The position numbers and the translations under genes are program-made. A stretch of 64,000 bases of DNA from sequence record PQ471515.1. One strand, given 5' to 3'. The stretch's first letter is position 1, and each line of letters starts with the position of its first letter. Below the pieces are notes generated by a model that worked only from the letters and a program-made list of their open reading frames with translations, was not told the origin of the DNA and did not search any database. Shown in pieces: positions 4,118 to 62,103 of this stretch.

Positions 4118-4459
4118 ATGGACATGAGTTCAATAATTCAGTACTTGAGCGAGAATTTTGTCAAAATCATTTCACGTGGTGGTATGATTGTGCATCCTGA
4201 AACTGAAGATATGTATATCATTCGTTTTGATACAAATTCTTATGATCAAGTACTTGTTGTTTCGAAATTGGTAGGTTATAATGAAGTCGTTCAGTTCTGC
4301 TGTACCGAGTTCGGTATCTATATTAAAGATGCAGAAACCAATGAGATTTCACATTATTTTTATCACACACTGATGGGTACTAAAGATTTTGGATTGAAAT
4401 TCAATGATTTAGTACAATGTCACTATATGTTTAAAACATACCCAGCATCTGGGAAATAA
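4118..4459 (+). CDS. Hypothetical protein
   Basis: AAGGAG SD upstream. Confidence 0.65.
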   Translation: MDMSSIIQYLSENFVKIISRGGMIVHPETEDMYIIRFDTNSYDQVLVVSKLVGYNEVVQFCCTEFGIYIKDAETNEISHYFYHTLMGTKDFGLKFNDLVQCHYMFKTYPASGK

Positions 4460-4470
4460 GGAGTAACAAT

Positions 4471-5286
4471 ATGAGCAACATTTTCTTCAAAACCATTTCC
4501 TTCAAAAAAGAATCTTACTCTTACGCTTATGTAGATGGTAAAGTACTCAATATCGTTCTAGATGGTGTTGATGTGCCTGTTCAATTTACCAGTCATCAAG
4601 AAGCGATTGAGGGTGCTCAAGAGCTTAACAGCTTACTAAATGGCATTGAGAAGAAACCTGAAGTTAAATCTGACCTTGATTTATTGGTTGACAAAATTAA
4701 AAGTGGTGAACTATTATCAATTCTAGACCAGTGTAATGAAAAATTACGTGGTGTTGTTGGTGATGTACGTACTACAGTTCAAGATCGTCTACTTGAGCAA
4801 GCATTCAAAGAAGTTACTAAGAAAACTGAAGAACGTGTTGAAGGTATGATTAAAAACATTGATGACGTTCTCACTCATATGTTCACCAAGCCATACGAAT
4901 CAAGTACTGATTCTGAAGAGAAACAAGAAGAACCAGTAGAACGCACCAAGCCATCTATTGTTACTAAAGTTAAACATAGTTTTGGTTCACTGGATGATGT
5001 ATTTGGCTTTACAAATGTACGTGTTAGTACTGATGAAAAGCCAGAAGTTGATGAAATGCTCATTGGTGACATGACAACTGGTCAACTCAAAAAAGAGATT
5101 GATACCTTTGTTAATGAACTAATTAGTTCTGAACGTGCTGAAAATATGTTTAGCAGTATTTCAGCAAACTTCGGTAAAGAAGCAACTGAGCAAGCAGTAC
5201 AGGCATTCAAAGATTTGATTTACACTGTTGCAATTGCTAATCCAGAACAAACACTGGAAGAAGTTCTACGTAAAAACTTCAAATAA
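4471..5286 (+). CDS. Hypothetical acidic helical/coiled-coil protein
   Basis: AAGGAG SD; 271 aa E/K-rich; ends at bidirectional terminator. Confidence 0.7.
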   Translation: MSNIFFKTISFKKESYSYAYVDGKVLNIVLDGVDVPVQFTSHQEAIEGAQELNSLLNGIEKKPEVKSDLDLLVDKIKSGELLSILDQCNEKLRGVVGDVRTTVQDRLLEQAFKEVTKKTEERVEGMIKNIDDVLTHMFTKPYESSTDSEEKQEEPVERTKPSIVTKVKHSFGSLDDVFGFTNVRVSTDEKPEVDEMLIGDMTTGQLKKEIDTFVNELISSERAENMFSSISANFGKEATEQAVQAFKDLIYTVAIANPEQTLEEVLRKNFK

Positions 5287-5300
5287 GATATAGATAAAAG

Positions 5301-5327
5301 AAAAGCCACTACAATGTAGTGGCTTTT
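5301..5327. terminator. Bidirectional intrinsic terminator
   Basis: AAAAGCCACTAC-aat-GTAGTGGCTTTT between convergent genes. Confidence 0.85.
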
Positions 5328-5330
5328 TTG

Positions 5331-6488
5331 TTATGCGTTATAACCAACAATGACTACAGTACAGCCAAATGGTTCAACAACTTTTAATACAACATTATCA
5401 TCTGCATCGAGTTCAACTTCACTTAGAACAACATGATTGTCTTCAGCATAGACTTGAACTTGTGGGAGGATTTTACCATGTTCACTAGCAGGAATTGACA
5501 GTGTATACATGGAATCACCATCAACTGCCCAATCACTATCGGCATACGTATTGTGATATGGAGTGGTGTGTAAGGTTTTACCAATAATACTCAATGAGAT
5601 TGGAGCGTCATCGGTTTGGTACACAGTGATATTACCGCTAGGATCTACAATGAGGTCTACTCCAATTTGGAATAAATCACCACTGTATGCTTGTAGAGCA
5701 AGATACTCACCACGCTCATGAACAGTAGCTGGTACAGTTGCCATATACATGCCATCGGGCGTGTACTCAAACTGCGATAGAAGTACTGAAGTAACGAAGT
5801 CAATATCTTCGCCGCTTTCTAGTATATCAAATTCAATAGTTTTGGTATTATATATGTCAGAAGTGAGGATGATGGTTCCTTTACCGGATTGAGTAATTGG
5901 ATCAACTGGAATACTAAAAACATCATCAATTATTTCAGTTGTGAAGTACTCGGTTCCGTCAGGAAGTATAACGGTAATACGCATTCCAGTTGTATTAATG
6001 ACTGAACCTGCGTTGAATAGGCGACCACCTACCAAATCATCACCTACGAACGTTGGGAACATAAGGATGTTGTCTATATCTCTATCTATAATCCCGCATT
6101 CAGGGGTGTACATATTATATAGTGTTTGTGAACTACCTAGAATTGTTTTGTGCAAAAGAAACTTATAAACAAACCCAGTAGGATCTGATTCAAGTTTAGC
6201 ATCTGAGTATCCTCTTACGAAAAAAGAGTTCTTTCTTATTTCACTTAGGATTTGGTCATTAGTTTTGTTGTAGTTTAATTGATATCCTTGTATATCCTTT
6301 GTTGTAATTTGTACTTTACGATAAATTACATTACTTACAGGATCAAGTAAATCATATAATCTATGGCTTCTCTGACGATAGATTCGAACATTTTTGAGTT
6401 TAGTCCCATCGTTGAGAATTGCACCATCGACTACATAACCACATTCACCGAACTTATATCGTCCAGCAGCAGCAATCGATCTTGACAT
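5331..6488 (-). CDS. Putative virion structural protein
   Basis: 385 aa; GGAGG SD; preceded by the array-type TAAATA-N3-TATAAT motif; two C-terminal beta-rich repeats (VPATVHERG / IPASEHGK). Confidence 0.5.
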   Translation of the reverse strand: MSRSIAAAGRYKFGECGYVVDGAILNDGTKLKNVRIYRQRSHRLYDLLDPVSNVIYRKVQITTKDIQGYQLNYNKTNDQILSEIRKNSFFVRGYSDAKLESDPTGFVYKFLLHKTILGSSQTLYNMYTPECGIIDRDIDNILMFPTFVGDDLVGGRLFNAGSVINTTGMRITVILPDGTEYFTTEIIDDVFSIPVDPITQSGKGTIILTSDIYNTKTIEFDILESGEDIDFVTSVLLSQFEYTPDGMYMATVPATVHERGEYLALQAYSGDLFQIGVDLIVDPSGNITVYQTDDAPISLSIIGKTLHTTPYHNTYADSDWAVDGDSMYTLSIPASEHGKILPQVQVYAEDNHVVLSEVELDADDNVVLKVVEPFGCTVVIVGYNA

Positions 6489-6510
6489 TCATCCCTCCAT
6501 TGGTATAATT

Positions 6511-6525
6511 ATTATAATGTATTTA
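6511..6525 (-). promoter_or_regulatory. Putative late promoter motif
   Basis: Minus strand TAAATA-CAT-TATAAT. Confidence 0.6.
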
Positions 6526-6548
6526 TTATGGATAGGTAAAAAAGCACC

Positions 6549-6577
6549 TTGACTGAGTTGTGTTTTTGACGTATACT
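6549..6577 (+). promoter_or_regulatory. sigma70-type early promoter
   Basis: TTGACT-17-TATACT. Confidence 0.7.
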
Positions 6578-6604
6578 TAAATGGAATATCAATAAGGGGA
6601 TTTT

Positions 6605-7189
6605 ATGAGTGTTGTAGAAAAGCGATTAGTACTGAAAAATGGCAAAATGACTGTTAAGCTATACAAAGATGAAGCTGATTCTTTTATGGCTAAAGCAATT
6701 GAGAAATCTGAACGATATAAGATTCTTGCACCTGCAAGTAAATCGCCGTATGGATTTAATCACGCTCACAGTCATTTTGTAGGGATGGTATGTGAACATG
6801 CATCATTTGTACTTTTTAATGAAATTGAAAACTATTCAGGTATTGCACTTAACATTGATCCAGCGTTCCAAAGTGATGGTCGTGATGGTGAATGTGATAT
6901 CAAAGTAAACAACTTAAGAATTGAAGTGAAAGGCATCAAGTACAAATCGTGGACCGACTTTGGACCATGTGTTAGTACTCGACAGTTAAAAAATATACAG
7001 AAAAAAGCTGACGTTATTCTGTGGGTATTGTATAATGAGAAAAAGCAAGAATTCACATTTGAGGGATTCAACTATGTAAAAGACATTAGTTCGATTCCAG
7101 TTGTGCTAACAGGTGTACCAGGGCGACCGATGATTGAAAATCACCCAGTACTGAGTATTATTAAACCACTTCAGGAGTTACCATTATGA
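6605..7189 (+). CDS. PD-(D/E)xK restriction-endonuclease-like protein
   Basis: E...DGRDGECDIKVNNLRIEVK matches the D-x(n)-E-x-K catalytic signature. Confidence 0.5.
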   Translation: MSVVEKRLVLKNGKMTVKLYKDEADSFMAKAIEKSERYKILAPASKSPYGFNHAHSHFVGMVCEHASFVLFNEIENYSGIALNIDPAFQSDGRDGECDIKVNNLRIEVKGIKYKSWTDFGPCVSTRQLKNIQKKADVILWVLYNEKKQEFTFEGFNYVKDISSIPVVLTGVPGRPMIENHPVLSIIKPLQELPL

Positions 7190-7413
7190 TTACTGCCACT
7201 GTATATCAAGATATTAATGAAGAATTTAATTCTAAAATTGCATTTTTATCCTTTCCCGTATTGCCAGCTATTGGTGCTACGTTGAATCTTACAATCTGTG
7301 GCTTTGAAAAATACTATGAAGTACTAGATATTGAGTACTGTGCAGATGTTTATTCATGCAACAGTGAGATTGCTATTCCGGTGCAAATCGACATTATAGT
7401 AAAAGAGGTTTGA
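7186..7413 (+). CDS. Hypothetical protein
   Basis: ATGA coupling to upstream gene. Confidence 0.6.
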   Translation: MITATVYQDINEEFNSKIAFLSFPVLPAIGATLNLTICGFEKYYEVLDIEYCADVYSCNSEIAIPVQIDIIVKEV

Positions 7414-7415
7414 TT

Positions 7416-7874
7416 ATGTTTAAACACTTTCTAGTAATCACTGCTGTTGTATTCAGTACTTCCTGCTTTGTAGCACCAGTACATGCGGAAGACCAGCGTC
7501 AAACAATCAAGACGATTGGAACAGGGAAAGCCCAACCAAAACGTACTGCTGAAGAATACATGCCTGAGATGCGTGAACGTTACCGCCAGCAATACCGTGA
7601 AAAACATGCTAATGATAAGCCTATCAAAAAGCATAAATGGAATGTAGTCAAATCGCCATCGTTTTGTGCTGGGTATGCTAAGGTTAAGGATGAACAGCAC
7701 AACAAGCAGTACTATAAAGATATGTACACATTCTATGATTCGAGGATCTCGGATGATGACATGATGGCTGCTAAGGTTGATAAAGAAGAATTTCTTCAGG
7801 GTTATGACATGACCGATGATGACAAGATCATGGAATGTGTTGAAGTATATGAAAAATACAGAGGTTTTGAATGA
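7416..7874 (+). CDS. Putative exported protein
   Basis: Signal peptide ending PVHA-ED; GAGG SD. Confidence 0.6.
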   Translation: MFKHFLVITAVVFSTSCFVAPVHAEDQRQTIKTIGTGKAQPKRTAEEYMPEMRERYRQQYREKHANDKPIKKHKWNVVKSPSFCAGYAKVKDEQHNKQYYKDMYTFYDSRISDDDMMAAKVDKEEFLQGYDMTDDDKIMECVEVYEKYRGFE

Positions 7875-8314
7875 CACTTTTGCTGATTCTAGGTTTATTA
7901 GTGTCATATTTCATTTTTCTTAACATCTTCTCTGATGCATCACATTTTGCATATGCTTCAGCTATTGCAAAACACGAAGGGATAAAGAAGTATATTCCTG
8001 CATTGTTATTCTCATATATGTACCATCCAAGGTACTTTACACTAGGTGTGTTTGACAAGTATGTATACGACGAAAAAGCACTCAATGAAATTGAATACTT
8101 TGTAAGAACTCATGCTAATAACAATCCAAAATCATTAATTAACTTTACTGATAATCGTAAACGTGTTAGTATTAGAACTGACTTGTATCCTACCAGTCAC
8201 TTTCATCTAGGCGATTGTAGTGTGTACAGGGTTAGATACGAAAACTTACTGTTACCACCATCACATATAAGATACATAGAAAAATACTTGTTGAAATGTG
8301 TTGACTCCAAATAG
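7871..8314 (+). CDS. Hypothetical membrane-anchored protein
   Basis: N-terminal hydrophobic helix; ATGA coupling. Confidence 0.6.
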   Translation: MTLLLILGLLVSYFIFLNIFSDASHFAYASAIAKHEGIKKYIPALLFSYMYHPRYFTLGVFDKYVYDEKALNEIEYFVRTHANNNPKSLINFTDNRKRVSIRTDLYPTSHFHLGDCSVYRVRYENLLLPPSHIRYIEKYLLKCVDSK

Positions 8315-8330
8315 TAAATGGCAGTATAAT
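8301..8330 (+). promoter_or_regulatory. sigma70-type early promoter
   Basis: TTGACT-18-TATAAT; -35 lies in last codons of upstream gene. Confidence 0.7.
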
Positions 8331-8367
8331 AGCTTCGTACCGCAATAACTGACAAGAGGATTTAACG

Positions 8368-8826
8368 ATGGACGTATTAGCTACTCAATTCAAACGCAAC
8401 GCAGAAGAACGTGAAGGTTACCTAAGTATCAGTGAAGTGGTTGAAGATGGATTCAAGCAGTACATTTTCAACAGTGCAATTAAACTGAAGCCAACAAAAG
8501 ATTCACCGGACCGCAGCTTCACCAAGTGGATTGCATACTGGGAAGAGTCACCAATTGCAATCGAAATGACTGTCATCACTACAGTACTGGAAACTGGTTA
8601 CATCAAAGCAATTGTAGTTGATAAGAAAGTTCGTACTCTTGATGAAATCGGGACATACCCAGCACGTAACTCTAAAGTATTTGGGTGTTTAGTTGATGGT
8701 AAGTTTATGATTGAAAAAGATGCTAAGAACTATGTAATTGATAAACTACAAACCAGTGCTACTAAACAGGAAGTCGTAGACCAGAACGCAGTGGATGCTA
8801 TTAAAAAGGCATGGGGTCTGAAATAA
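8368..8826 (+). CDS. Hypothetical protein
   Basis: GAGGA SD; first gene after promoter. Confidence 0.7.
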   Translation: MDVLATQFKRNAEEREGYLSISEVVEDGFKQYIFNSAIKLKPTKDSPDRSFTKWIAYWEESPIAIEMTVITTVLETGYIKAIVVDKKVRTLDEIGTYPARNSKVFGCLVDGKFMIEKDAKNYVIDKLQTSATKQEVVDQNAVDAIKKAWGLK

Positions 8827-9248
8827 TGTTCACACTTAGCAATGCAAAGTATCTATTTCTTATTGCTATTATTGGTTGGGTGATGGCTCCAGTGCTTAAT
8901 GCACTGGGGTTTCCAGACGGACATAAACTTGTAAATGTTTCAGGTGTAATCCAGGGCATTTCATGGTATTCATTGATTATATTTTCTATATGTATTCATA
9001 CATTTGCACGTGATCACCGCCGTCTGCTTTTTGTTAAAGTATTCGGTACTAAGAGATATAGTTTTGTGTTTACATTTATTTTAATACCATGTATTATCTA
9101 TGCTTTTGTATTTGATTACTATACTTATCTGTGGGTGTGTGGTTCTATGTTTGTTATGTTGGAATATACAAGAACTGTTCAAAACTCATATGCTGATGAG
9201 TATTATGATCTTGAAGTTAAACGAAAATTAACGGAGCTAAACAAATGA
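8826..9248 (+). CDS. Hypothetical multi-pass membrane protein
   Basis: About 4 hydrophobic segments; TAATG coupling. Confidence 0.6.
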   Translation: MFTLSNAKYLFLIAIIGWVMAPVLNALGFPDGHKLVNVSGVIQGISWYSLIIFSICIHTFARDHRRLLFVKVFGTKRYSFVFTFILIPCIIYAFVFDYYTYLWVCGSMFVMLEYTRTVQNSYADEYYDLEVKRKLTELNK

Positions 9249-9670
9249 GGGGATACAATAAGATTTGTATTTTTGTATTTTTAGTTTGTGCAATCAATAC
9301 ATTTGGATATTACTGTACTGAAAACAACATTTCATATGGTTTAAATCCTTTGTGGTTTACAATTGCCAATGTAGCACAAATTGGTATTGCTGTTATGTCT
9401 GCACTTATGTTCTGTCCAATTGTAACTATGGATACTGATCATGAAAGGCTTGGATTTATCCGTGATACTGGAGACGAACCTTACAGTAGATTGATTGTGT
9501 TGTATCCATTTATTGTTATTTTAGGTACTAACATCCAACTTGGGTCTTTATCTAATAGTGTTACTTCAGCAGCCATTACAGTCTTTGCATTCACATTTTT
9601 TATGGTACACAAATCAGTACTCAAATGGCACATCACCAAAATGGCAGAGAAAGGTACGGAAAACAGTTGA
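9245..9670 (+). CDS. Hypothetical multi-pass membrane protein
   Basis: About 4 hydrophobic segments; likely paralog of upstream ORF. Confidence 0.6.
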   Translation: MRGYNKICIFVFLVCAINTFGYYCTENNISYGLNPLWFTIANVAQIGIAVMSALMFCPIVTMDTDHERLGFIRDTGDEPYSRLIVLYPFIVILGTNIQLGSLSNSVTSAAITVFAFTFFMVHKSVLKWHITKMAEKGTENS

Positions 9671-9695
9671 CGTGAGTTATTGAGTCATATATAAT
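9667..9695 (+). promoter_or_regulatory. sigma70-type early promoter
   Basis: TTGACG-17-TATAAT; upstream TGA stop is inside the -35. Confidence 0.65.
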
Positions 9696-9729
9696 TATTA
9701 CATCAAAACTGGGAAATGGTAAGGAACTT

Positions 9730-9981
9730 ATGAACATCGATAAGGTCAAAGAACTTAGTGAAGCACTAATTAAGAACGAAGAAGCTTGTGAAGAACTTCG
9801 CAGTACTATCAAAGTTGAGTACGCACGTCTTCAAGCTATGCTTCAGGAATCCGAATGGGTTGTAACTAAATCTATCGAAGCAATCTATAAGGATATCGAA
9901 TCCCTTTTCAACAAGAAAAGTAAGATTGAATCTGATTCATATAACAAACGTAAAGAGTTATCTACTGCACTTGGTATCTAA
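9730..9981 (+). CDS. Small coiled-coil hypothetical protein
   Basis: AAGGA SD; heptad-like E/K/L pattern. Confidence 0.65.
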   Translation: MNIDKVKELSEALIKNEEACEELRSTIKVEYARLQAMLQESEWVVTKSIEAIYKDIESLFNKKSKIESDSYNKRKELSTALGI

Positions 9982-9987
9982 AAGTAT

Positions 9988-10016
9988 TTGACTTAACCAA
10001 TAACATGGAGTACAAT
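9988..10016 (+). promoter_or_regulatory. sigma70-type early promoter
   Basis: TTGACT-17-TACAAT. Confidence 0.65.
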
Positions 10017-10055
10017 GTGCTCCTAATTTAATTATCAGCTAAAAAGGAAAACATT

Positions 10056-10316
10056 ATGAAATCTATTCTCGTTGCAGTTAACCTGGTTGCTTCCCCATCT
10101 TTTAACTTCAAACAAGTTGTTGCTGATAATCTGAAGAAGATCTGTCCAAACGCTGAATTGACTTTCTGTGTGTTTGATTCAGAAAAAGTAACTAAAGTTG
10201 ATCTAAACTATCTTTTGAACGAAGTACAAAGTATTTCTGGTGAAAGTAGTTTGGAAGTACTGAATACGGTTGCTGATGACTATGATGATACACTGGTAAT
10301 TTCGGAGAAATTCTAA
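10056..10316 (+). CDS. Hypothetical protein
   Basis: AAGGA SD after promoter. Confidence 0.65.
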   Translation: MKSILVAVNLVASPSFNFKQVVADNLKKICPNAELTFCVFDSEKVTKVDLNYLLNEVQSISGESSLEVLNTVADDYDDTLVISEKF

Positions 10317-10321
10317 ATCCA

Positions 10322-10741
10322 ATGCTTAGATTTATACATTACTTAATCAGTAAGTTCTTTGGTTATTATACTATTGAAGGTAAAGCTACGCTTGCACATA
10401 AAATCTTTGTAGCATTATGTGTGGGTGATTATGACGTATTGAATAAGCACTGTAAATCTAAAGCATGTATTGACATAATGGCACTTCGTATCTATGAGTG
10501 TCAGTTCAATAGATATAATTTTTACCAGTACAGATATGATAAAGATGATTTTGATAGCATTAAAATGCTAAAGAATTTATGTAATAATAAAAAGAATATG
10601 CATATATCTGAATTTGTTGCATTGTATTTTTATTTAAAAAGTTCATTATACATGAATACACTACAACGCTTCGATACTAGAATTAATGTATTCAACGATA
10701 AAGAATTTTATATCTATGATAAATTTTTAGATAAGGTTTAA
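10322..10741 (+). CDS. Hypothetical protein
   Basis: 139 aa ORF in operon. Confidence 0.55.
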   Translation: MLRFIHYLISKFFGYYTIEGKATLAHKIFVALCVGDYDVLNKHCKSKACIDIMALRIYECQFNRYNFYQYRYDKDDFDSIKMLKNLCNNKKNMHISEFVALYFYLKSSLYMNTLQRFDTRINVFNDKEFYIYDKFLDKV

Positions 10742-10742
10742 T

Positions 10743-11240
10743 ATGACAACTGTTTATATTGATAAACGCTTGGGAGTATTACTTACTGATTCAAAAGTGA
10801 CATCAACTGAGCAACGTTCATTTTTGAACCTATTCCCGTTGAAGCCAAAACTTAGTTATGGTGTAGTTTCACAAAAAACATTGTATGTACACGACCGACT
10901 GTTTAGTGCTTGCGGTGAGGTTAGTGAAATTAACAAAGTACTGAGATACTTGATTTCACAAGAGACTGTGATACCAGACCGCAAGGCGAGTTGTCACTGT
11001 GTTCTTGTGTCAAAAGATTACATCATTCACTTAATCGTTAATAAGGGTAAGTTTACCAAGAAGATTGATTATCTCCATAATGATTATACATTCTTTATGG
11101 GTAGTGGTGGTGAATACATGCTTGATGCAGCAGTACATGAAGAGTATAATACTCTTCTTGATAAGGTATTTGATACCTTCATGGATGTTCATAACCATGA
11201 TATCTATACCGATGATAATATTAATGTATACCGTTTTTGA
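10743..11240 (+). CDS. HslV/proteasome-beta-like Ntn-hydrolase (peptidase)
   Basis: N-terminal M-TT nucleophile, LLTDSKVT, conserved K, CG and GSGG motifs. Confidence 0.65.
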   Translation: MTTVYIDKRLGVLLTDSKVTSTEQRSFLNLFPLKPKLSYGVVSQKTLYVHDRLFSACGEVSEINKVLRYLISQETVIPDRKASCHCVLVSKDYIIHLIVNKGKFTKKIDYLHNDYTFFMGSGGEYMLDAAVHEEYNTLLDKVFDTFMDVHNHDIYTDDNINVYRF

Positions 11241-11262
11241 TTTCATTCATTAGGAGAAGTAA

Positions 11263-12228
11263 GTGAAAAAGCTTGATTTAAATGCAATTTCTGAAGAAGT
11301 ACTGGATGAGTGTTTTGCTAGTGAAGAAGTCAACGTATTAGAGGCTCTTGATTCCGTAGAAGAAGAAGAACATGACGGTCACAAGTTTGAGAAACCAAAA
11401 ACAGGTATCAGCTTAACTCGCCCTAAAGGGATAACGAATGAAATGCTCATCCAAGCAGTGCGTGATGGCATAGACGTTAAAAAGAACATTGACCTTTTGG
11501 TTCGCTACAACTATCCAATGGTAGTAAGTGTTGCACGTAAGTGTACATGTTTTATCCCATTTGAAGATAAGATTTCTTATGGTGTTGAAGGTTTAATGCG
11601 AGCAATTCATACGTTCGACACTACCAAAAATGTTAAGTTCATTACATATGCAACAACAACTGTGTACATGACAATCTATAACGAAAGTGCAGATGCTAAT
11701 TATCTAGTGCATTTCCCACGTTATATGAGTGTTAATAACATTTATGTGAAACGTTGTGTTGAAGAGTATCAAAGGAAACATGGTAAATACCCAACTCCTG
11801 AGATGGTGTCAAAAGAGACTGGTATTGAGATTCAACACGTTAAGAATTGTCTAACTTACAATAACACTTATGTAGCATTGAATATGAAAATGAGTAATGA
11901 TTCAGAAAGTACATTATCTGACATTGTTACTTCAGTTGAACCTGATTACAACTTAGGTGTAGAAACTGTCAGTACCCCACTGGTACAAAGTATTGCAGAA
12001 ATGATGAGTAACCTATCTACCAAAGACCGTGAATTGATTGAACGTGTACATGGTATTGGTTCTTATTCTGAACCAGAAACGCTACGAGAAATCATTGAGA
12101 GTGGTTTTGAAGATGAGAAGGGTAAGGTCATGACTGCTCGTTCTTCATTGCACCGTAAGTACTCTGAAGCAATGGAACGACTGCGTAAGATGGTTAAGAC
12201 AAAAGGTTATGAGTTCGAAGATTTTTAA
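11263..12228 (+). CDS. Phage-encoded sigma70-family RNA polymerase sigma factor
   Basis: Region 2 (YNYPMVVSVARK...GVEGLMRAIHTFD...KFITYAT) aligns without gaps to RpoD region 2; region 3 PTPEMVSKETG; region 4-like LSTKDRELIERVHG; GTG start with GGAG SD. Confidence 0.85.
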   Translation: MKKLDLNAISEEVLDECFASEEVNVLEALDSVEEEEHDGHKFEKPKTGISLTRPKGITNEMLIQAVRDGIDVKKNIDLLVRYNYPMVVSVARKCTCFIPFEDKISYGVEGLMRAIHTFDTTKNVKFITYATTTVYMTIYNESADANYLVHFPRYMSVNNIYVKRCVEEYQRKHGKYPTPEMVSKETGIEIQHVKNCLTYNNTYVALNMKMSNDSESTLSDIVTSVEPDYNLGVETVSTPLVQSIAEMMSNLSTKDRELIERVHGIGSYSEPETLREIIESGFEDEKGKVMTARSSLHRKYSEAMERLRKMVKTKGYEFEDF

Positions 12229-12232
12229 GATT

Positions 12233-12262
12233 AAAGGGTTGACTTCGGTCAGCCCTTTTTTT
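12233..12262 (+). terminator. cUUCGg-loop terminator (repeat cassette, no -10)
   Basis: GGGTTGAC-TTCG-GTCAGCCC-T7 directly after sigma gene. Confidence 0.85.
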
Positions 12263-12800
12263 TATGGGACAAATTTATTAATGGTGATACAATGATCTAT
12301 GTACAATCACAATGACAGTACTGGTACTGACAATCTTCCCCTACTTCACTTGAAAATGTAAAGGATAGATGAGCTTTTCATTGTAGCGAACAGCAAAAGA
12401 AACCCGTTAGATGTGGGCATAGTTTGAACCCCTCACGGCAATGCGGCTGTATAAAGAACCACGTTAGGATAGCTGGTGGTTCCTCGATAGACATATAAGG
12501 ATAACACCTTACGAATTATCTAAGGGAGAGTTATCGAATTTTGTACAGGAAAGTTGCGTCCAAAATTTGAGTACTCACATTAAGTATTTGATTGCATAGA
12601 TACTTAATGAAGATACACTATGTTTAAAAGTGTAGACCGTCATATGAAACTGAAGTAGAGAGAAACAGGATGACCCGCTTTCGCACTCGTTATGAGTAAT
12701 CTTCAATGCAATAGCTCTGATACCATCAGCGTCAAATTTCCCTCCGTGCGGGGGGGGGAAGAAAAATCCCTTCCTCAAATCCCGTCAATATTAAAAGTCC
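12263..12800. other. Long structured non-coding interval, candidate ncRNA or regulatory region
   Basis: About 540 bp with no credible ORF; several stems and a G9 tract. Confidence 0.4.
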
Positions 12801-12829
12801 TTGACAGTTATGATTCATTCGCGTAGAAT
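12801..12829 (+). promoter_or_regulatory. sigma70-type early promoter
   Basis: TTGACA-17-TAGAAT. Confidence 0.7.
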
Positions 12830-12893
12830 ACGTAGTATTAGAAGCGAACAGACATCTCGAAGAGATGGATGATTAACCACTAAGGAATATCTA

Positions 12894-13103
12894 ATGAATT
12901 CAGTAATCTTTTTAATTATTGCTCTTTCACCACAATCTGGTGTACAAATCACCCCAATGAATTCAATGAATCAATGCATTGCAGTACGTGACAGTACGTA
13001 TGAACAAGTAAACAGCGTTTCACTTAGAACAGTTGGTGAAGAATTAATGTGGTGTTACAATAGTAATACTAAAGAAAAACTAATTGTTGGACAAACAGAA
13101 TGA
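12894..13103 (+). CDS. Small putative exported protein
   Basis: Hydrophobic N-terminus, two Cys. Confidence 0.55.
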   Translation: MNSVIFLIIALSPQSGVQITPMNSMNQCIAVRDSTYEQVNSVSLRTVGEELMWCYNSNTKEKLIVGQTE

Positions 13104-13327
13104 GTTATGGTGTTCGTTTTGAGATTCGTTCTATTGTTATCAATGACGAGAAACAAGCATCGTTGGATGACGATATACGAGAACTATATCTATCATGTAT
13201 CCGTGCAAAATCTGAAGCAGATGCATTATCACAAATGATTGGTTTTAATTTCTTTCATGGATACTATTTGGTACGAGTTATCGAAGTTAAAAAAGTCACT
13301 TTTGAGTGTCTTGCTGGAGAAATATAA
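13100..13327 (+). CDS. Hypothetical protein
   Basis: ATGA coupling; IRAKSEADA motif like 17374-18022 ORFs. Confidence 0.55.
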   Translation: MSYGVRFEIRSIVINDEKQASLDDDIRELYLSCIRAKSEADALSQMIGFNFFHGYYLVRVIEVKKVTFECLAGEI

Positions 13328-13328
13328 A

Positions 13329-14123
13329 ATGAGCACTATAGATGAATTGATTCGCCGGAATTCAAAATACTACGAACCATCAGAAATTGTCGGCAACATT
13401 ACTAAATCTGAGTTCGGACCAAATACTCGAAAACTCATTCATGTAATGTCACGTGATGGCTTTAAATGTGATTGTTGTGGTGAATCCAATGTGGTATTCA
13501 CTTTACATAAGCACAGTACTAAAGACCGTTATAAATTCAGACCTTATGTACTTAAAGGGAAACGCCTTGTACGCATGACGTTAGACCATAATGTACTAGA
13601 CTGTCTTCAGGGCGGTAATGATAAAGAGAACATGACTGCATTGTGTGAGGATTGTAACGCATTACGCCAGCATAAGTTTGCTGAGTACAGTGAGTTTAAG
13701 TACTGGTATCATAACGCAGATCGTTCCATCGAGCCTGACGTTAACTACTGCTTCATTGAGTACATTAAGAATGCAAAAGATACATACATTCTAAAATCAA
13801 TGTCACCTATTACAGTGTTCCCTGAGAATCTATTCAGTACTATGCAGCGTGATTTTAAACGTGGTATCATTAATGCATTCAAACACTTAGACAAAGGTAT
13901 CAAGCACTTTGAGGTGCAATGCTTAAATGAAGGAATGAATCGTTTAGTACAAATTTACATGAAATCATTTATAGGTGTTGACACCGCACGTCTACCAGTA
14001 TATAATTACTTTATTGAAAGCGAAGAAGGTGAATCACTTCGTGATTATGGTGAAAGATTTAATAATAAAGTTTTCACTGCAATCGCAAACGAGATTCATT
14101 ACTATAAACCATATGTAATTTAA
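13329..14123 (+). CDS. HNH endonuclease-domain protein
   Basis: RDGFKCDCCG...TLDH...GGNDKENMTALCEDCN; start moved to ATG 13329. Confidence 0.75.
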   Translation: MSTIDELIRRNSKYYEPSEIVGNITKSEFGPNTRKLIHVMSRDGFKCDCCGESNVVFTLHKHSTKDRYKFRPYVLKGKRLVRMTLDHNVLDCLQGGNDKENMTALCEDCNALRQHKFAEYSEFKYWYHNADRSIEPDVNYCFIEYIKNAKDTYILKSMSPITVFPENLFSTMQRDFKRGIINAFKHLDKGIKHFEVQCLNEGMNRLVQIYMKSFIGVDTARLPVYNYFIESEEGESLRDYGERFNNKVFTAIANEIHYYKPYVI

Positions 14124-14137
14124 TTAGAGGATATATC

Positions 14138-14320
14138 ATGCAAATCATCATTCTTATCGTAGGTATCATTCTTGGTGTATATGGTCACTCCTGGATGAAC
14201 GAGAAGTTCCCTAATACCCGTCCTGAGTATTGCAGTACTAATGTATTCCAGAATAGTGATAAACCAAAGGATAGTATTGGTAAGAAACTGGACAAAGTAC
14301 TTGACGTAATCAACGAATAA
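14138..14320 (+). CDS. Small membrane-anchored protein
   Basis: GAGGA SD; N-terminal TM helix. Confidence 0.55.
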   Translation: MQIIILIVGIILGVYGHSWMNEKFPNTRPEYCSTNVFQNSDKPKDSIGKKLDKVLDVINE

Positions 14321-14329
14321 GGGTAAAGT

Positions 14330-14530
14330 ATGTTTAAATCAAATACAAATGTTGGTAAGAAGGTTCAATTACTTGAGGATGTATCCACTATGAGTGGAAC
14401 CTTCACTAAAGGTCACATCATGACTATTATTGCCGAAACATCCCGTGGGTGGGATTTGGAAGATGCTGATGGTAATCGCATCCTTGAGGCTGGATTCTAT
14501 GGTCATCGTGAATATAAAATCATTGATTAA
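14330..14530 (+). CDS. Small hypothetical protein
   Basis: 66 aa beta-rich ORF in operon. Confidence 0.6.
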   Translation: MFKSNTNVGKKVQLLEDVSTMSGTFTKGHIMTIIAETSRGWDLEDADGNRILEAGFYGHREYKIID

Positions 14531-14539
14531 GGATGCAAC

Positions 14540-14623
14540 ATGACTTTAGAGATTGTCTTTGGTATTGTTAGCTTAGTCGTCTGTGTGGGTTGGTTTGGGT
14601 ATCTGATGATTTTTGGTGATTAA
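14540..14623 (+). CDS. 27 aa single-TM peptide (not in ORF track)
   Basis: AAGGA SD; MTLEIVFGIVSLVVCVGWFGYLMIFGD. Confidence 0.45.
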   Translation: MTLEIVFGIVSLVVCVGWFGYLMIFGD

Positions 14624-14626
14624 TAC

Positions 14627-14654
14627 TTGACATAAGATATCAGTACTGTATAAT
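14627..14654 (+). promoter_or_regulatory. sigma70-type promoter, AGTACT subclass
   Basis: TTGACA-16-TATAAT with CAGTACTG abutting the -10. Confidence 0.7.
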
Positions 14655-14699
14655 GTTTATATCAAACGACACCCACTTTAACAAATAATAGGAAATATT

Positions 14700-14978
14700 A
14701 TGTCTTTTACCAAAGAAGAACGTGACCTTATTAAAAAAGCAATCTGGTTTTATGCTAATGAAGGGGAGTGCGATGAAGAAAAAGCACGTGAACTGTGTAA
14801 TATCCTTGAGCAGAAACAAGAACTGAAAGTTTATCGTATCCGTGTTTTGGATGACGGGGATCGTATTGTCCTAGCTGAAACAAAAGAAGAAGCAGAACAA
14901 ATCTTCACTGATAAAAACGAAAATCCACATTGGATGGAAGAAGTCTGTGAAGTAAAAAAAGGTACTTATATCGATTGA
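14700..14978 (+). CDS. Hypothetical protein
   Basis: AGGA SD; stop codon inside next -35. Confidence 0.65.
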   Translation: MSFTKEERDLIKKAIWFYANEGECDEEKARELCNILEQKQELKVYRIRVLDDGDRIVLAETKEEAEQIFTDKNENPHWMEEVCEVKKGTYID

Positions 14979-15003
14979 CTGTACTGAATAATAGCAGTAT
15001 AAT
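14975..15003 (+). promoter_or_regulatory. sigma70-type early promoter
   Basis: TTGACT-17-TATAAT. Confidence 0.7.
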
Positions 15004-15096
15004 GTTTATATCAAAGGGAATGCAGTGAAAGGAAAGACAGCATAATCGTACTCGTCACTGCGTTTCCACCCTTTTAAATTAAATGAGGAATTAACT

Positions 15097-15405
15097 ATGT
15101 TTCAAACTAACACTCAAGGTTTTGTAATCATCGATTTGAATCAAAACAGCGGTTATTGGATGAAACCTACTGACGCATGTATGCAGTTTGATTTTTTAGG
15201 TTACAGGATTAGTGTAAGTACTGGTGCTTCTGTACTGCGTGGTGGTTGTATCGTTGAACATCTGGTAACTGATCCAGAAGGTCGTGAGTATGAAATCGCA
15301 GGTTCAGTACAAGATGCCATTATGTTTGTATGTCAGCGTGAAATGAATAGTTCGAATTCAAATGCACTGACTCATGCTCTTTCTCAAGAAGTGGAGGTTC
15401 GTTAA
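15097..15405 (+). CDS. Hypothetical protein
   Basis: GAGGA SD; structured leader. Confidence 0.65.
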   Translation: MFQTNTQGFVIIDLNQNSGYWMKPTDACMQFDFLGYRISVSTGASVLRGGCIVEHLVTDPEGREYEIAGSVQDAIMFVCQREMNSSNSNALTHALSQEVEVR

Positions 15406-15656
15406 TGAAATATATCGTAGCAGTACTCGTTGCATTTTTACTCACTGCATGTGACGCTTCAACCAAAGAACGCACAAGTGATTTTATTCTCCCTATTGAA
15501 TTACAAGAAGCAGGATGTAAGATTTATCGTATGCAAAAGGATGGTGCTGGCGTAACCTTGTATACAGTTTATTGCCCTAATGCAAATACCAGTACTGGAT
15601 ACAGCAGCGGTAAAACACGAATCAATACTTCAGTGATTAATGGAGTACAACAATGA
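15405..15656 (+). CDS. Putative lipoprotein
   Basis: Lipobox LLTA-C. Confidence 0.7.
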   Translation: MKYIVAVLVAFLLTACDASTKERTSDFILPIELQEAGCKIYRMQKDGAGVTLYTVYCPNANTSTGYSSGKTRINTSVINGVQQ

Positions 15657-16021
15657 GCCTTGATACAACCCGTGCAACAGATTTATTAACTCGTATGAAT
15701 AATGAAGAATTTCTTGCTGAAATAAAGTACAAGCTTGAAAAACTGGCACGAAGTGCTGAAGTAATTGAAGTTGAAGGTCACTTACCAATGGACCAATTCC
15801 ATACGTTCAACGAAGATATGGTTTATTATCCAAATGAAATTTGGATTGAGTGGGAGTCATGGACTAACAAAACTCTACGCATTGAAGGTTATTGTGTGAA
15901 TTATGAATCTGAACCTGGTGATGTTACAAAAACTCTCTCCATTTGGTGTACAAAAACACATGAACTCGTTGAGGTGAATTTGAATTATATGAAAGGTTTC
16001 CGTTGGGGTGATGTTCAATGA
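15653..16021 (+). CDS. Hypothetical protein
   Basis: ATGA coupling. Confidence 0.6.
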   Translation: MSLDTTRATDLLTRMNNEEFLAEIKYKLEKLARSAEVIEVEGHLPMDQFHTFNEDMVYYPNEIWIEWESWTNKTLRIEGYCVNYESEPGDVTKTLSIWCTKTHELVEVNLNYMKGFRWGDVQ

Positions 16022-16293
16022 TTAAAAAACTATTGACAGTTGTCTTTGTATTCTGTACAATGTTTCTTACAGCATGTAATGAAGACGGCAGGTTTAGTGC
16101 AAAAGACTTAGTTCGTCAGGATTGTACATTCACAGGTAAGTCTTTTATTAACGAGTATGAAATATGTACACAATCAGGTCGTATCTGTGGTGGTTGGGAA
16201 AAACGTCAGGAGCGATTGTATGTATATGAATGCCCTGGTCATCTCAACAAAGTACTAAGCACACACAAACTTGTTTATGATAAGGTTGAATAA
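16018..16293 (+). CDS. Putative lipoprotein
   Basis: Lipobox FLTA-C; Cys-rich mature part. Confidence 0.7.
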   Translation: MIKKLLTVVFVFCTMFLTACNEDGRFSAKDLVRQDCTFTGKSFINEYEICTQSGRICGGWEKRQERLYVYECPGHLNKVLSTHKLVYDKVE

Positions 16294-16508
16294 TGACTAC
16301 CAATGAAATGATGCAGGTTATTTGGGATAAAGGTTGCGATCTTAAAATCACCAGTACTGATGTTCGTGTATTCAAAACTGAATATATGGAGTACTTGGAC
16401 CTTGATACTTATAATAATATTGTATCAATTGAACACAAAGGTGCAGTACTGGAAACAATTGACGTAGTACTGAAGAAAGCTACCGACCTATTAGGAGCGG
16501 CAGTGTGA
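16293..16508 (+). CDS. Hypothetical protein
   Basis: TAATG coupling. Confidence 0.6.
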   Translation: MTTNEMMQVIWDKGCDLKITSTDVRVFKTEYMEYLDLDTYNNIVSIEHKGAVLETIDVVLKKATDLLGAAV

Positions 16509-16651
16509 ATAACAAAGAGTGGGAAGAGTACCGTAAGAAGTGCAGGGAGTTTGATAAAGAACTAACTGGTACAGTGAATGCAGTAATGTGGGTATCTGTA
16601 ATTATTGCAGTTCTTGCGTTGGGTGCTATTATTATTAATAAATTATTCTAA
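16505..16651 (+). CDS. 48 aa single-TM protein (not in ORF track)
   Basis: GTGA coupling; MNNKEWEEYRKKCREFDK followed by a TM helix. Confidence 0.5.
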   Translation: MNNKEWEEYRKKCREFDKELTGTVNAVMWVSVIIAVLALGAIIINKLF

Positions 16652-16661
16652 GGCGAATATC

Positions 16662-16862
16662 ATGTTTACTTTATATCTCGCAGTAGTTCTCACCAATGGT
16701 GAAATCACTCGTACTATTGGTGAAGGTGTATATAAAACACCAGACCAGTGCTACTCTGCTACTCATTGGCCTCGCGATAGTGGGGATGAAACTCGCACTG
16801 AATTCAAATGCATGAAAGTAAAAGGTGATTTTGTTAACCTTAAGGTTATCGAGGCGAAATAA
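16662..16862 (+). CDS. Small putative exported protein
   Basis: Hydrophobic N-terminus and two Cys, like 12894-13103; start moved to ATG 16662. Confidence 0.55.
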   Translation: MFTLYLAVVLTNGEITRTIGEGVYKTPDQCYSATHWPRDSGDETRTEFKCMKVKGDFVNLKVIEAK

Positions 16863-17377
16863 TGGATATTAATGAGTTGTTGATCTTATTGTTTAATCGT
16901 GGAAATGATGTAAGACGTTCTGAATATCAAGACAAAATTCACATTGAAACTGATAAATGTTATGGTAAAACAACTCATGAGATTTTGAAGCCAAATGGCA
17001 AACGATATGCCGATGTATGTTTTCATGAACGAAGTGATGGTAGTGAAATAATCAGTACTGAAATTGTGTTTTATGATAGATCCTCGGCAGGTTCGTATGA
17101 AATAGAACTTATATATTGTCCTGGTTCAGAAACACACAATAAACGTCAGATATTATATGATGTTTATTCACCTCCAGGTGTAGCTGAATATTTTGTTATT
17201 GATTACAGTACTGAAGAAAGTGTGTTTCAACAGAGCTTGATTCATAACTTCCAGTTGAATGATCCAAATGTACCAAAGTTGTTCAAACTACTCGATACTA
17301 TCGATGTTGATTTTGAATTTGTTATGTGCATTAGAACTTCCTTGATCGATGAATTTATGGAACTACTTAATATATGA
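16862..17377 (+). CDS. Hypothetical protein, EE-FQ family
   Basis: TEESVFQQSLIHN motif. Confidence 0.65.
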   Translation: MDINELLILLFNRGNDVRRSEYQDKIHIETDKCYGKTTHEILKPNGKRYADVCFHERSDGSEIISTEIVFYDRSSAGSYEIELIYCPGSETHNKRQILYDVYSPPGVAEYFVIDYSTEESVFQQSLIHNFQLNDPNVPKLFKLLDTIDVDFEFVMCIRTSLIDEFMELLNI

Positions 17378-17595
17378 ATCGTTACTACATTGTGTATGAG
17401 CATGTATCTGAGTTTAATAATGTACGTGGTTATAAGAAAGAAGTACAGAAGATTGATGTATTTGTTCGTGCATTAAGTCCAACACATGCACTATTTAAAT
17501 TGTTTGATGAAGTAACTAAGTACAACACATCAAAAACACAACGCTATATTGAAACAGTACATAGTGTAATACTCACTGAATATGATGGAGAATGA
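17374..17595 (+). CDS. Small hypothetical protein (tandem paralog 1 of 3)
   Basis: VRALSPTHA motif. Confidence 0.55.
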   Translation: MNRYYIVYEHVSEFNNVRGYKKEVQKIDVFVRALSPTHALFKLFDEVTKYNTSKTQRYIETVHSVILTEYDGE

Positions 17596-17598
17596 CAA

Positions 17599-17817
17599 AT
17601 GAATTTATATCTAGTTGAAGGGTCAGTACAAGTATCCAAGCAAGACGGAGAAGGGTATCGTTTTTCACATGTAGAATATTTTAAGTACGTAGTAAAGGCC
17701 GATGGTCAGTACGACGCAGAAATTCAGGTTGAAGAATCATTCCGTAAGAAGAATAATATTGGTAAATTTGAATACCAAGACTTACAATTCACTGTATGGC
17801 CTAGCATTAATGACTAA
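17599..17817 (+). CDS. Small hypothetical protein (tandem paralog 2 of 3)
   Basis: VKADGQYDA motif. Confidence 0.55.
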   Translation: MNLYLVEGSVQVSKQDGEGYRFSHVEYFKYVVKADGQYDAEIQVEESFRKKNNIGKFEYQDLQFTVWPSIND

Positions 17818-18022
17818 GATGTGGTGGTGTCATGGTGTCTACAATGTCTATGAATATGGTAGATTCAAAATGAGCAGCACCTATGCCAGACGTGTTAATG
17901 CGAAAAACCAAGTTGATGCTGCTTGTGAGATTGTAGAGTGGTATGCAGAGTTCAATGCCATTGATTTTATGTACGAAATAGTTACAATAAATGTTGTACA
18001 AATTGACACGTCTCTGATATAA
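17810..18022 (+). CDS. Small hypothetical protein (tandem paralog 3 of 3)
   Basis: VNAKNQVDA motif; start moved to ATG 17810. Confidence 0.5.
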   Translation: MTKMWWCHGVYNVYEYGRFKMSSTYARRVNAKNQVDAACEIVEWYAEFNAIDFMYEIVTINVVQIDTSLI

Positions 18023-18058
18023 TAACTACATCAAAAAACAACTGCAACTGAGGATACT

Positions 18059-18721
18059 ATGTTAGTTAATCTTAATTTCATCACTTCTCCTGATTGGGCA
18101 TTGCGTGGTGTTTCTTTGAACTTTAAAGAAACTAATTTCGACTACATTGGTGATTGTACTTTAGTTAATGCTACATTTGATCCTCATCATCCTTTTTGGG
18201 CTGAGATTCATGATCCTAATGTAAACAATAGTACATCTGTTATGACTATTGTACAGACGAAACATACAGGTATTCTCGCAGGTTACAGACCTGAACATGC
18301 CATCAAGCACTTCACTGATTATGATGTAGTGGATGAATATCCAATGATCCATGAAGATGGAAGTTTATACACGTCAGAAGACTTCCGTGCTATCTTTAAT
18401 AGTACTGATGACATTCTGCCAAGTGGTCGTCCACGTCCTGAGTCTTATCTTATGCACCCATCTTATGGTGTAGCAGATACACTTGAACAGATTTTGACGA
18501 AGTACAAGAATCTTATTGAAGGTCCAGAAGAAATTGTCATGTGCTATCATCCAGTACTGAAGTCTGACCAACCAGAGAGTGGTGGGTGGCGTTGGCATAA
18601 GAATGGTGAGTACATCGGTACTAAGCGTAGTAAAGAACGCTTTGAGTACTTGTATGATGAGCCAGATGTTGAGGTTGTTTTATGTTATAATTTTCTTAAG
18701 GTGAAAAAGAAATGTATCTAG
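18059..18721 (+). CDS. Phage hypothetical protein
   Basis: GAGGA SD; SGGWRWHKNGEYIG motif. Confidence 0.65.
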   Translation: MLVNLNFITSPDWALRGVSLNFKETNFDYIGDCTLVNATFDPHHPFWAEIHDPNVNNSTSVMTIVQTKHTGILAGYRPEHAIKHFTDYDVVDEYPMIHEDGSLYTSEDFRAIFNSTDDILPSGRPRPESYLMHPSYGVADTLEQILTKYKNLIEGPEEIVMCYHPVLKSDQPESGGWRWHKNGEYIGTKRSKERFEYLYDEPDVEVVLCYNFLKVKKKCI

Positions 18722-18954
18722 TATTGAGTTTTGTAGTCGCATTATTGTTTATGTTCTACCCTACACTAGTAGCAGTAGCCACTAAACGAAAGCTGGTGGA
18801 TATCACTACTGTATTCTTGCTAAACGTGGCACTCGTTCTAGTGTCTATTATCATTCCCGTGAGCTTTACGGTTATTGACATGGCATCTGTATTACTATTC
18901 GTCTTCAGTTATCTTATGCTTATTGAAGAAAAACCTGTTGACAAACGTTTGTAG
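18712..18954 (+). CDS. Imm-like (superinfection immunity) membrane protein
   Basis: FYPTLVAVATKRK...VFLLNV pattern resembles the T4 Imm family. Confidence 0.45.
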   Translation: MYLVLSFVVALLFMFYPTLVAVATKRKLVDITTVFLLNVALVLVSIIIPVSFTVIDMASVLLFVFSYLMLIEEKPVDKRL

Positions 18955-18965
18955 TACTGTATAAT
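18938..18965 (+). promoter_or_regulatory. sigma70-type promoter, AGTACT subclass
   Basis: TTGACA-16-TATAAT with TAGTACTG abutting the -10. Confidence 0.7.
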
Positions 18966-19012
18966 GGTTCTTGTAGTCTGAAACTTAACACTTAAACTTG
19001 AGGATATAAAAC

Positions 19013-19339
19013 ATGTTATCAGTTCTAATTTCAATTCCTGCTCTAATTCTGTTATGGGTTATGGTTTTCGAATTCTTCATTAAAGACGAAACCGAGCGTG
19101 ATGAGTTTCGTGAGTTGTTTATGCTAGACTCACCTATTGCACGAATCTTCTTTGTTGTAGTACTTATTTCAGTACTGTCATGGTTAGTAAGTTTTGTATT
19201 ACCAATTGGACCATTTGTTTCAATTATGAATTTAGTTGAGAACATTGTTGGTATTGTATGGTTTACTAATGCATTGTTTGCTGGTAAAGTTTCCATTTGG
19301 GTTGATATCTTGAAAGATAAACTAACTAGTAAGAAGTAA
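19013..19339 (+). CDS. Hypothetical membrane protein
   Basis: GAGGA SD; 2-3 TM helices. Confidence 0.6.
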   Translation: MLSVLISIPALILLWVMVFEFFIKDETERDEFRELFMLDSPIARIFFVVVLISVLSWLVSFVLPIGPFVSIMNLVENIVGIVWFTNALFAGKVSIWVDILKDKLTSKK

Positions 19340-19417
19340 CGTTCAAAAAGTCTCTAATAGTATTAAATACTTCTGTACAAATAATATGTGCAGAAGTATT
19401 GCTCGTTAGAGGTTATA

Positions 19418-19783
19418 ATGAAAAAATATATAAGAATGATAATGGTGTTTGTAGTATTCATGCTTTATTCAAGGTTCAGTACAGCCGTACCTGCTTACCT
19501 TGATTGTATGGGAAACGATGGAACATGGCATGTACTTTCTAATGACCCACAAAATGGAAACAATATTGTCGTAGATGATGAGGTTTACCGTTTCAGGGCC
19601 GAGAGTTTGATTGGGAATAAAAAGGTATCGACATATAAATCAGATGCTGGTATAATAGCAAATGTAATATTGATAGTGGACCCCAAGACAAAGGATGGGG
19701 ATATTTACATAGTCATTTATCAAGATTCGTCGAATAAACGCGATCAGGACATTGATAAATTGAATATTCATTGTGAACTGTAA
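19418..19783 (+). CDS. Putative exported protein
   Basis: Signal peptide then YLDC; VVDDEVYRF similar to 20174 ORF. Confidence 0.6.
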   Translation: MKKYIRMIMVFVVFMLYSRFSTAVPAYLDCMGNDGTWHVLSNDPQNGNNIVVDDEVYRFRAESLIGNKKVSTYKSDAGIIANVILIVDPKTKDGDIYIVIYQDSSNKRDQDIDKLNIHCEL

Positions 19784-19793
19784 GGTATAACAA

Positions 19794-20524: not shown

Positions 20525-20528
20525 ACAT

Positions 20529-23805: not shown

Positions 23806-23876
23806 TTTGACTTTGGAACAACCATTTCATATGTGATATAATCTTAAGTGTCTGTTGAAATAAACAGCACATGAAG

Positions 23877-62095: not shown

Positions 62096-62103
62096 GGAAT
62101 AAT

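Follow-up and report, generated by a model that had tools for sequence, protein, structure and literature searches.

We describe here a sigma70-family factor encoded by Escherichia phage Turkey3, and propose that it is a middle sigma, made early in infection, that reads an extended -10 class of promoters (class B, GrGACA-N16-TGnTATAAT) with a non-canonical set of residues. We consider this assignment probable, on the evidence of the gene's position, the residues it has lost and kept, the distribution of promoter classes in the genome, and the way in which box and protein change together among related phages. The gene is already known and annotated as a phage sigma, and its departures from the primary sigmas are real and family-wide.

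The sigma gene and its locus

The DNA analyzed (the window) corresponds to the final 64 kb of the Escherichia phage Turkey3 genome (PQ471515.1, 361,208 bp), with which it shares 100% identity, and several sister phages are ~98–99% identical to it. Coordinates are those of the window unless marked as record positions, a window position being the record position minus 297,208; genome-wide counts were made on the public Turkey3 record of 361,208 bp. Turkey3 is a RaK2/121Q-like jumbo phage. The RaK2/121Q-like 'group 2' jumbo phages are without an RNA polymerase of their own and encode sigma factors (PMC7824862). The features of the locus are as follows.

9667–9695, + strand: class A host-type promoter, TTGACG-N17-TATAAT, heading a five-gene unit in which the sigma gene is last
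11252–11257, + strand: ribosome-binding site of the sigma gene, AGGAGA, 5 nt upstream of its GTG, read directly from the sequence
11263–12228, + strand: phage sigma70-family sigma gene, GTG start, 321 aa, regions 1.2–4.2
12233–12264, + strand: intrinsic terminator directly 3' of the sigma gene, with an 11-bp stem, a TTCG loop and a T run
12266–12293, + strand: class B ('middle') promoter with GGGACA-N16-TACAAT and a TG at -15/-14, possibly read by the sigma
12300–12790, + strand: stretch devoid of ORFs after this promoter, possibly encoding a non-coding RNA

The product of 11263–12228 is identical to XMR01419.1, annotated as 'RNA polymerase sigma factor' in Escherichia phage Turkey3. The class A promoter at the head of the unit would imply that the sigma is expressed early through host sigma70. 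Public RNA-type runs yield only short, fragmentary contigs of low depth over 9500–13500, which are possibly DNA, and a search of one literature library for experimental work on this phage sigma family found none.

The gene directly upstream of the sigma gene (10743–11240, + strand) lies in the same transcription unit and encodes a 165-aa protein with a weak match to the HslV-family peptidases (phrog_1040, E 2.8e-6) and no match in Pfam. A protease subunit co-expressed with the sigma could bear on turnover of the host sigma, although this is pure speculation. A short way downstream of the locus is an HNH endonuclease gene (13329–14120, + strand; phrog_35175, E 2.2e-148), and an HNH gene likewise lies right after the sigma gene of GAP32; homing endonucleases seem to favor the neighborhood of the sigma locus.

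A divergent sigma closest to groups 1 and 2

The 321-residue protein matches Pfam Sigma70_r2 (PF04542; E 2.6e-9, 37 bits against a cut-off of 24) and Sigma70_r3 (PF04539; E 1.3e-11, 44.8 bits against a cut-off of 25.3), and its only PHROG match is to phrog_351 (E 4.6e-48). Pfam Sigma70_r4 gives no match to it, even at E = 1, because an insertion of eight residues lies between the two helices of the region 4.2 helix-turn-helix, a feature that the earlier note on this DNA did not report. Residues 250–313 align to region 4 of SigB and RpoD with the eight extra residues placed in the turn (phmmer, MAFFT), and the AF2 model has confident region 4 helices at 253–263, 274–279 and 293–313, with the insertion forming a confident, short, hairpin-like excursion. 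The mean pLDDT of the model is 68, with values of 70–89 in the sigma2, sigma3 and sigma4 domains and below 50 in the N-terminal 50 residues, which are acidic and poorly modeled; the fold, as modeled, is that of a complete sigma2-sigma3-sigma4 protein. Foldseek searches with this model return sigmaS (5ipl_F, E 3.8e-11) and mycobacterial SigA, both in initiation complexes, as the top matches, with low TM scores (~0.4) that stem from a different arrangement of the domains in the free model.

All of the curated NCBIfam sigma models score far below their cut-offs, the best being TIGR02393 (RpoD_Cterm; 96 bits against 354), with TIGR02980 (SigBFG; 67.7 bits against 234) and TIGR02479 (FliA; 61.6 bits against 189.6) behind it. 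Region 1.1 and the long non-conserved region of primary sigmas are absent, the protein having 321 aa in all with ~50 residues before region 1.2. The gp55 family profile phrog_234 does not match this sigma and matches only another gene of the phage, described below. We would class the protein as a divergent sigma that is nearest to groups 1 and 2 in both sequence and fold but falls outside every curated subfamily. Its nearest matches in sequence and structure are E. coli sigmaS and the group 1/2 sigmas, although it differs from these in a unique insertion within the region 4.2 helix-turn-helix and in a changed region 2.2.

Residues replaced and retained relative to sigma70

The earlier note had aligned part of the protein without gaps to residues 414–456 of E. 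coli sigma70, and this alignment was reproduced both by phmmer against solved structures and by MAFFT with MG1655 RpoD. The residue assignments drawn from it are also correct throughout: F427 and Y430 are retained, W433/W434 are T/T, R436/Q437 are Y/M, and T440/R441 are Y/N. Of the other residues, F419 and K426 are unchanged, E420 and R423 show only the conservative replacements E420D and R423K, and N383 and D403 are likewise retained. Further changes, absent from that note, are found at H455/E458, which are Y/V, and in region 2.2, where Q406/E407/N409 are S/Y/V. In sigma70, H455 and E458 read G-14 of the extended -10. Region 3.0 of the Turkey3 sigma begins P-R-Y-M-S-V, and the recognition helix of region 4.2, behind the hairpin-like insertion, is R-S-S-L-H-R-K-Y.

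Other sigmas have lost the Trp dyad too: E. coli FliA, with Q-R at these positions, is without it altogether, and RpoH, with H-W, is so in part. Among the phage proteins, position 433 is T, S, A or V and position 434 is T, S or A in all 18 close and distant homologues and in all eight phage genomes compared; loss of the tryptophans is, over this set of sequences, a trait of the phage family.

It is likely, as proposed before, that the specificity of the protein is unlike that of host sigma70, since the residues concerned with the fork junction and with -12 and -35 readout differ from those of primary sigmas. The more particular suggestion that it recognizes a non-TATAAT promoter does not agree with what we find, because a near-perfect TGnTATAAT characterizes the sole promoter class of this genome that is left as an orphan, and the residues of the A-11 pocket (F419, Y430, K426, E420D and R423K) are retained together with N383.

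Promoter classes in the Turkey3 genome

The intergenic -10-like sites were sorted into three classes, of host type (A), middle (B) and late (C). Class A consists of TTGACA or TTGCAA, a spacing of 16–17 bp, and TATAAT, and fills the early regions; examples lie at record positions 4196–20601 and at window positions 14649, 14998 and 18960. We note that ~90% of class A sites (29/32) have G at -13, and that many early promoters have a conserved downstream TTACATCAAGG element. Class B consists of a GrGACA box, a spacing of exactly 16 bp, and TATAAT with T-15, G-14 and A-13. Searches with the strict pattern give 21 sites on the + strand and 0 on the - strand, against 0.67 expected, and class B never has G at -13 in Turkey3, 121Q or RaK2. 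Both the -35 box and the -15 to -13 segment may serve to separate the two classes. In addition to the promoter behind the sigma gene, class B includes the following.

23815–23842, + strand: second class B promoter in the window, GGAACA-N16-TATAAT with TG at -15/-14
Record 214043–214070: class B promoter of the clamp gene

Class B promoters precede the genes for clamp, ssb, primase and gyrase and other genes of replication and nucleotide metabolism, and are also found before the gp55-like gene (-10 at record 191468) and before four paralogous ORF-free stretches. One of these stretches, of ~500 nt, is headed by the promoter at 12266–12293; this stretch, with its putative ORF-free transcript (~12300–12790), begins 60 nt after the sigma gene. 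Its paralogues are at record 61944–62132, 111779–112189 and 196247–196424, and the four are 74–93% identical over 70–190 nt, each lying immediately downstream of a class B promoter. A search of Rfam with the stretch after the sigma gene gave only sub-threshold matches, to the terminator hairpin. We regard the four stretches as candidate middle-phase non-coding RNAs.

The 361-kb genome contains one Sigma70_r2 gene and one gp55-type gene, and a search of it for a second sigma70-family gene found none. Homologues of AsiA and MotA were sought in the Turkey3 genome, and a helix-turn-helix protein in the operon of the sigma, and neither search found any. The unclassified intergenic gaps are mostly terminators or artefacts of crude gene calls, and no fourth motif was seen in them by eye. 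With one sigma70-family gene, a late class matched to gp55 and no fourth motif, class B is therefore the candidate target of the sigma.

The palindrome AGTACT is present at ~8 times its expected frequency in Turkey3 (981 against 122), and similarly so in 121Q, RaK2, GAP32 and CBB. It is found in coding and non-coding DNA, in terminator stems (e.g. 47480–47495 of the window) and in the flanks of early (class A) promoters.

Late promoters and the gp55-type factor

The earlier note had put forward TAAATA-N3-TATAAT, as seen at 47450–47464, as a candidate promoter for the sigma. The features that bear on this are listed here.

47450–47464, - strand: TAAATA-tag-TATAAT cassette, a late-class copy, with a terminator hairpin before it and AAGGAGG then ATG after it
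45235, 48668, 50757, 52922, 54178, 56573, 57822, 59002 and 60223, - strand: further copies of the cassette (start of TAAATA)
Record 191432–192370 (outside the window): gp55-type late sigma gene, beside SbcCD homologues

The motif itself is real, but it is not a distinct promoter, being a minus-strand copy of the late class. Class C has 54 intergenic TAAATA sites genome-wide, each within 120 nt upstream of a gene start, with the consensus TAAATA-N3-4-(T/C)ATA and no fixed -35-like partner. The sites precede the genes for tail sheath, tube, portal, prohead protease, major capsid protein and fibers, and the motif resembles the T4 late promoter TATAAATA. A full TATAAT follows TAAATA mainly in ~10 near-identical cassettes of the minus-strand gene array in the window, and elsewhere the sequence is YATA. 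The combined motif reaches ~10 copies because this array repeats a whole terminator-promoter-RBS cassette, and, the cassettes being near identical, the TATAAT part has therefore been copied rather than independently selected. As a separate promoter the combined motif is thus rejected, and it finds no support as the target of the sigma, since it is a subset of a T4-like late class that lies before virion genes in a genome with a gp55-type factor.

The alternative raised alongside it, in which a gp55-type late sigma encoded elsewhere reads TAAATA, proves the better reading given a T4-like late motif and a gp55-type gene. A search for a gp55 homologue located one gp55-type gene, elsewhere in the 361-kb genome, with matches to phrog_12791 (E 1.4e-152) and to phrog_234 (E 1.5e-16, at record 191912–192328), and the gene is kept in all eight phages, that is, in Turkey3 and in 7/7 relatives checked. 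TAAATA would be an ordinary late class served by the gp55-type factor, and the Turkey3 sigma is not likely to be its reader. The counterpart of T4 gp55 in Turkey3 is a separate gene and not the sigma studied here; it adjoins the SbcCD homologues, mirroring the T4 gene order 55-47-46, although its product is larger (~280–310 aa, against 185 aa for T4 gp55). We note that the annotated start of this gene is probably too far upstream: the class B -10 at record 191468 lies inside the annotated ORF, the PHROG match of the protein begins at residue 36, and an ATG at record 191531 with a GGAG ribosome-binding site is probably where translation starts.

Covariation of the class B box with the sigma

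Eight phages were compared (Turkey3, 121Q, RaK2, GAP32, CBB, fHe-Yen9-04, Munch and Hallingskeid), with the search for the box anchored only on TGnTATAAT and the commonest hexamer 16 bp upstream taken for each lineage. The class B boxes obtained are these.

Turkey3 and 121Q: GrGACA
Munch: GGACAA, the same core with a one-base shift away from the -10
Hallingskeid: GGGATA/G
RaK2: TGAACA
GAP32 and CBB: GAAACG/A
fHe-Yen9-04: GrAACr

Class A stays TTGACA across all eight phages, and within class B T-15, G-14 and TATAAT are invariant across the lineages, as is the start of region 3.0 in the sigma (P-R/K/E-Y/H-x-S-V). To our knowledge region 4.2 of host sigma70 is invariant among these enterobacterial hosts. 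The box thus drifts while class A and host region 4.2 are fixed, which argues that the reader of the box is phage-encoded and evolving.

Among the -35 contacts of sigma70, R584 reads -31, with R584A preferring A:T, and E585 and R588 read -33 (PMC2613000). Phages whose box has C at position 5 have R/K at residue 584 of the sigma, and Hallingskeid, with T at position 5 (22/27 sites), has H. At residue 585, S/T goes with G at box position 3, and G/A goes with A; RaK2 keeps His at 588 although its box position 3 is A. A maximum-likelihood tree of the sigma has three clades, Hallingskeid with Munch (82/86), Turkey3 with 121Q and RaK2 (94/97), and the GAP32 group (99/100), and on this tree the position-3 change of the box occurs twice independently and the position-5 change once. 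Changes in the box follow those of the sigma at 584 and 585, which are -35 contact positions in sigma70, a correspondence resting on three or four evolutionary events.

The base at -13 also varies with the protein: sigmas with N at 441 and R/K at 454 go with A, and those of the GAP32 clade, with R and E at these positions, go with G, in what is a single event; the A at -13 predicted for Hallingskeid held in 25/27 sites. Covariation of positions 436/437 with the -13 base was considered and rejected, as Munch and Hallingskeid have R-Q at these positions yet A at -13. We also observe that the region 4.2 insertion in the Munch sigma is two residues longer than in the others, beside the one-base shift of its box, which may be a coincidence or a linked change.

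Models for the role of the sigma

In the model that we favor, host sigma70 would transcribe the sigma gene early, from a promoter of consensus type, and the product of the gene would displace sigma70 on the host core RNA polymerase and direct the polymerase to class B. The remodeled region 4.2 would read the GrGACA-type box, and TATAAT would still be read, as region 2.3 keeps the A-11 pocket, with N383 contributing as well. The missing Trp wedge and H455/E458 could be offset by the near-perfect -10, the TG elements and AT-rich flanks, and other conserved residues, such as the P-R-Y-M-S-V at the start of region 3.0, may also compensate. The phage sigma would turn on the replication genes and the gp55-type gene, giving a cascade that would pass from host sigma70 to the phage sigma and then to the gp55-like factor at the TAAATA late promoters, with the host core used throughout. 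The residue changes, the placement of the promoter class and the covariation are observed, and we infer core binding, timing and the assignment of the factor to its class. There are counterpoints to be considered. The extended -10 of class B is the very element that sigma70 reads through H455/E458 and Q437/T440, and the phage sigma is without all four; the core-binding residues Q406, E407 and N409 of region 2.2 are changed; and covariation would also arise if another phage factor had co-evolved with the box, although one would then not expect the changes to lie at the cognate contact residues of the sigma.

The main rival explanation is that class B is read by host sigma70 together with a box-binding phage activator, analogous but not homologous to MotA/AsiA, and that the phage sigma has another target. 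It has the merit that T-15, G-14 and TATAAT are optimal sigma70 elements, that H455, E458, Q437 and T440 are just the residues the phage sigma is without, and that T4 middle promoters follow the same logic (PMC2613000). We nonetheless think it unlikely, in that the genome has no AsiA or MotA homologue, the sigma operon has no helix-turn-helix protein, no fourth motif was seen that might be the sigma's alternative target, and the changes in the box coincide with changes at the sigma's own positions 584 and 585. A different view is that the sigma acts mainly as a competitor or decoy, displacing sigma70 from core for host shut-off and having no promoter class of its own. The missing melting tryptophans, the presumed early expression and the acidic N-terminus would suit such a role, but the helices of regions 2.4, 3.0 and 4.2 are strongly conserved in the family and covary with promoter positions, which a pure decoy would not need, and we hold this to be quite improbable. 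Least credible of all is the reading proposed in the earlier note, that the phage sigma reads TAAATA(-N3-TATAAT). Altered -10 readout residues and an abundant motif well placed before genes speak for it; against these, the sites lie ahead of virion genes and look like T4 late promoters, all eight phages have a gp55-type sigma, the sites offer no fixed -35-like partner to a full-length sigma with region 4, and the TATAAT part is largely confined to the repeated cassette of one array, with YATA elsewhere.

Beyond the assignment of class B to the Turkey3 sigma, we lean cautiously toward a broader proposal for the family. Members of this sigma family would open consensus extended -10 promoters without the Trp wedge or the canonical residues that read TG and -12, and would read a -35-like box through a helix-turn-helix with a hairpin insertion; phage genera would have re-coded the box together with positions 584/585, to give mutually orthogonal pairs of sigma and promoter on the enterobacterial core.

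Relationship to other phage transcription switches

The gp28 protein of the Bacillus phage SPO1 is a sigma70-family factor, made early from promoters of host type, that takes the place of the host primary sigma on the host core polymerase and switches transcription to phage-specific middle promoters as one step of a sigma cascade. We propose that the Turkey3 sigma acts likewise on the host core. The two systems differ in that SPO1 gp28 is small and its -35 and -10 are both unlike the host consensus, whereas in Turkey3 the -10 remains TGnTATAAT and phage specificity is confined to the box. They part again at the late step, for which Turkey3 would rely on a T4 gp55-type factor and not on a second sigma of the same kind. 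The middle promoters of T4, which depend on appropriation of sigma by MotA/AsiA, have a host-like -10 and a phage box that replaces the -35 element, and share with class B the logic of a host-like (often extended) -10, a phage box and replication genes downstream. However, the Turkey3 box is probably read by region 4.2 of a dedicated sigma, and not by an activator on a remodeled sigma70.

In CBB and GAP32, a TGAAACG box with a TATA -10 has been described before DNA-synthesis genes, together with a predicted late motif ATAAATA (PMC5259590), and both of these published promoter classes were recovered in those genomes here. The CBB and GAP32 papers speak of 'divergent RpoD-like' promoters but assign no reader to the class, and they do not note the residue changes in the sigma or the change of box with sigma across genera.

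Implications

Samples from gut, manure and wastewater commonly contain RaK2/121Q-like jumbo phages, which are also candidates for use in phage therapy. If the assignment is true, it completes a three-step cascade of host sigma70, phage sigma and gp55-type factor that uses only the host core polymerase. It would also mean that a sigma70-family protein reads and melts the consensus TGnTATAAT by means of other residues, and would bear on the extent to which the Trp dyad and H455/E458 are needed. The lineage-specific pairs of box and residue offer a natural experiment on -35 recognition, and possibly a source of orthogonal sigma/promoter pairs.
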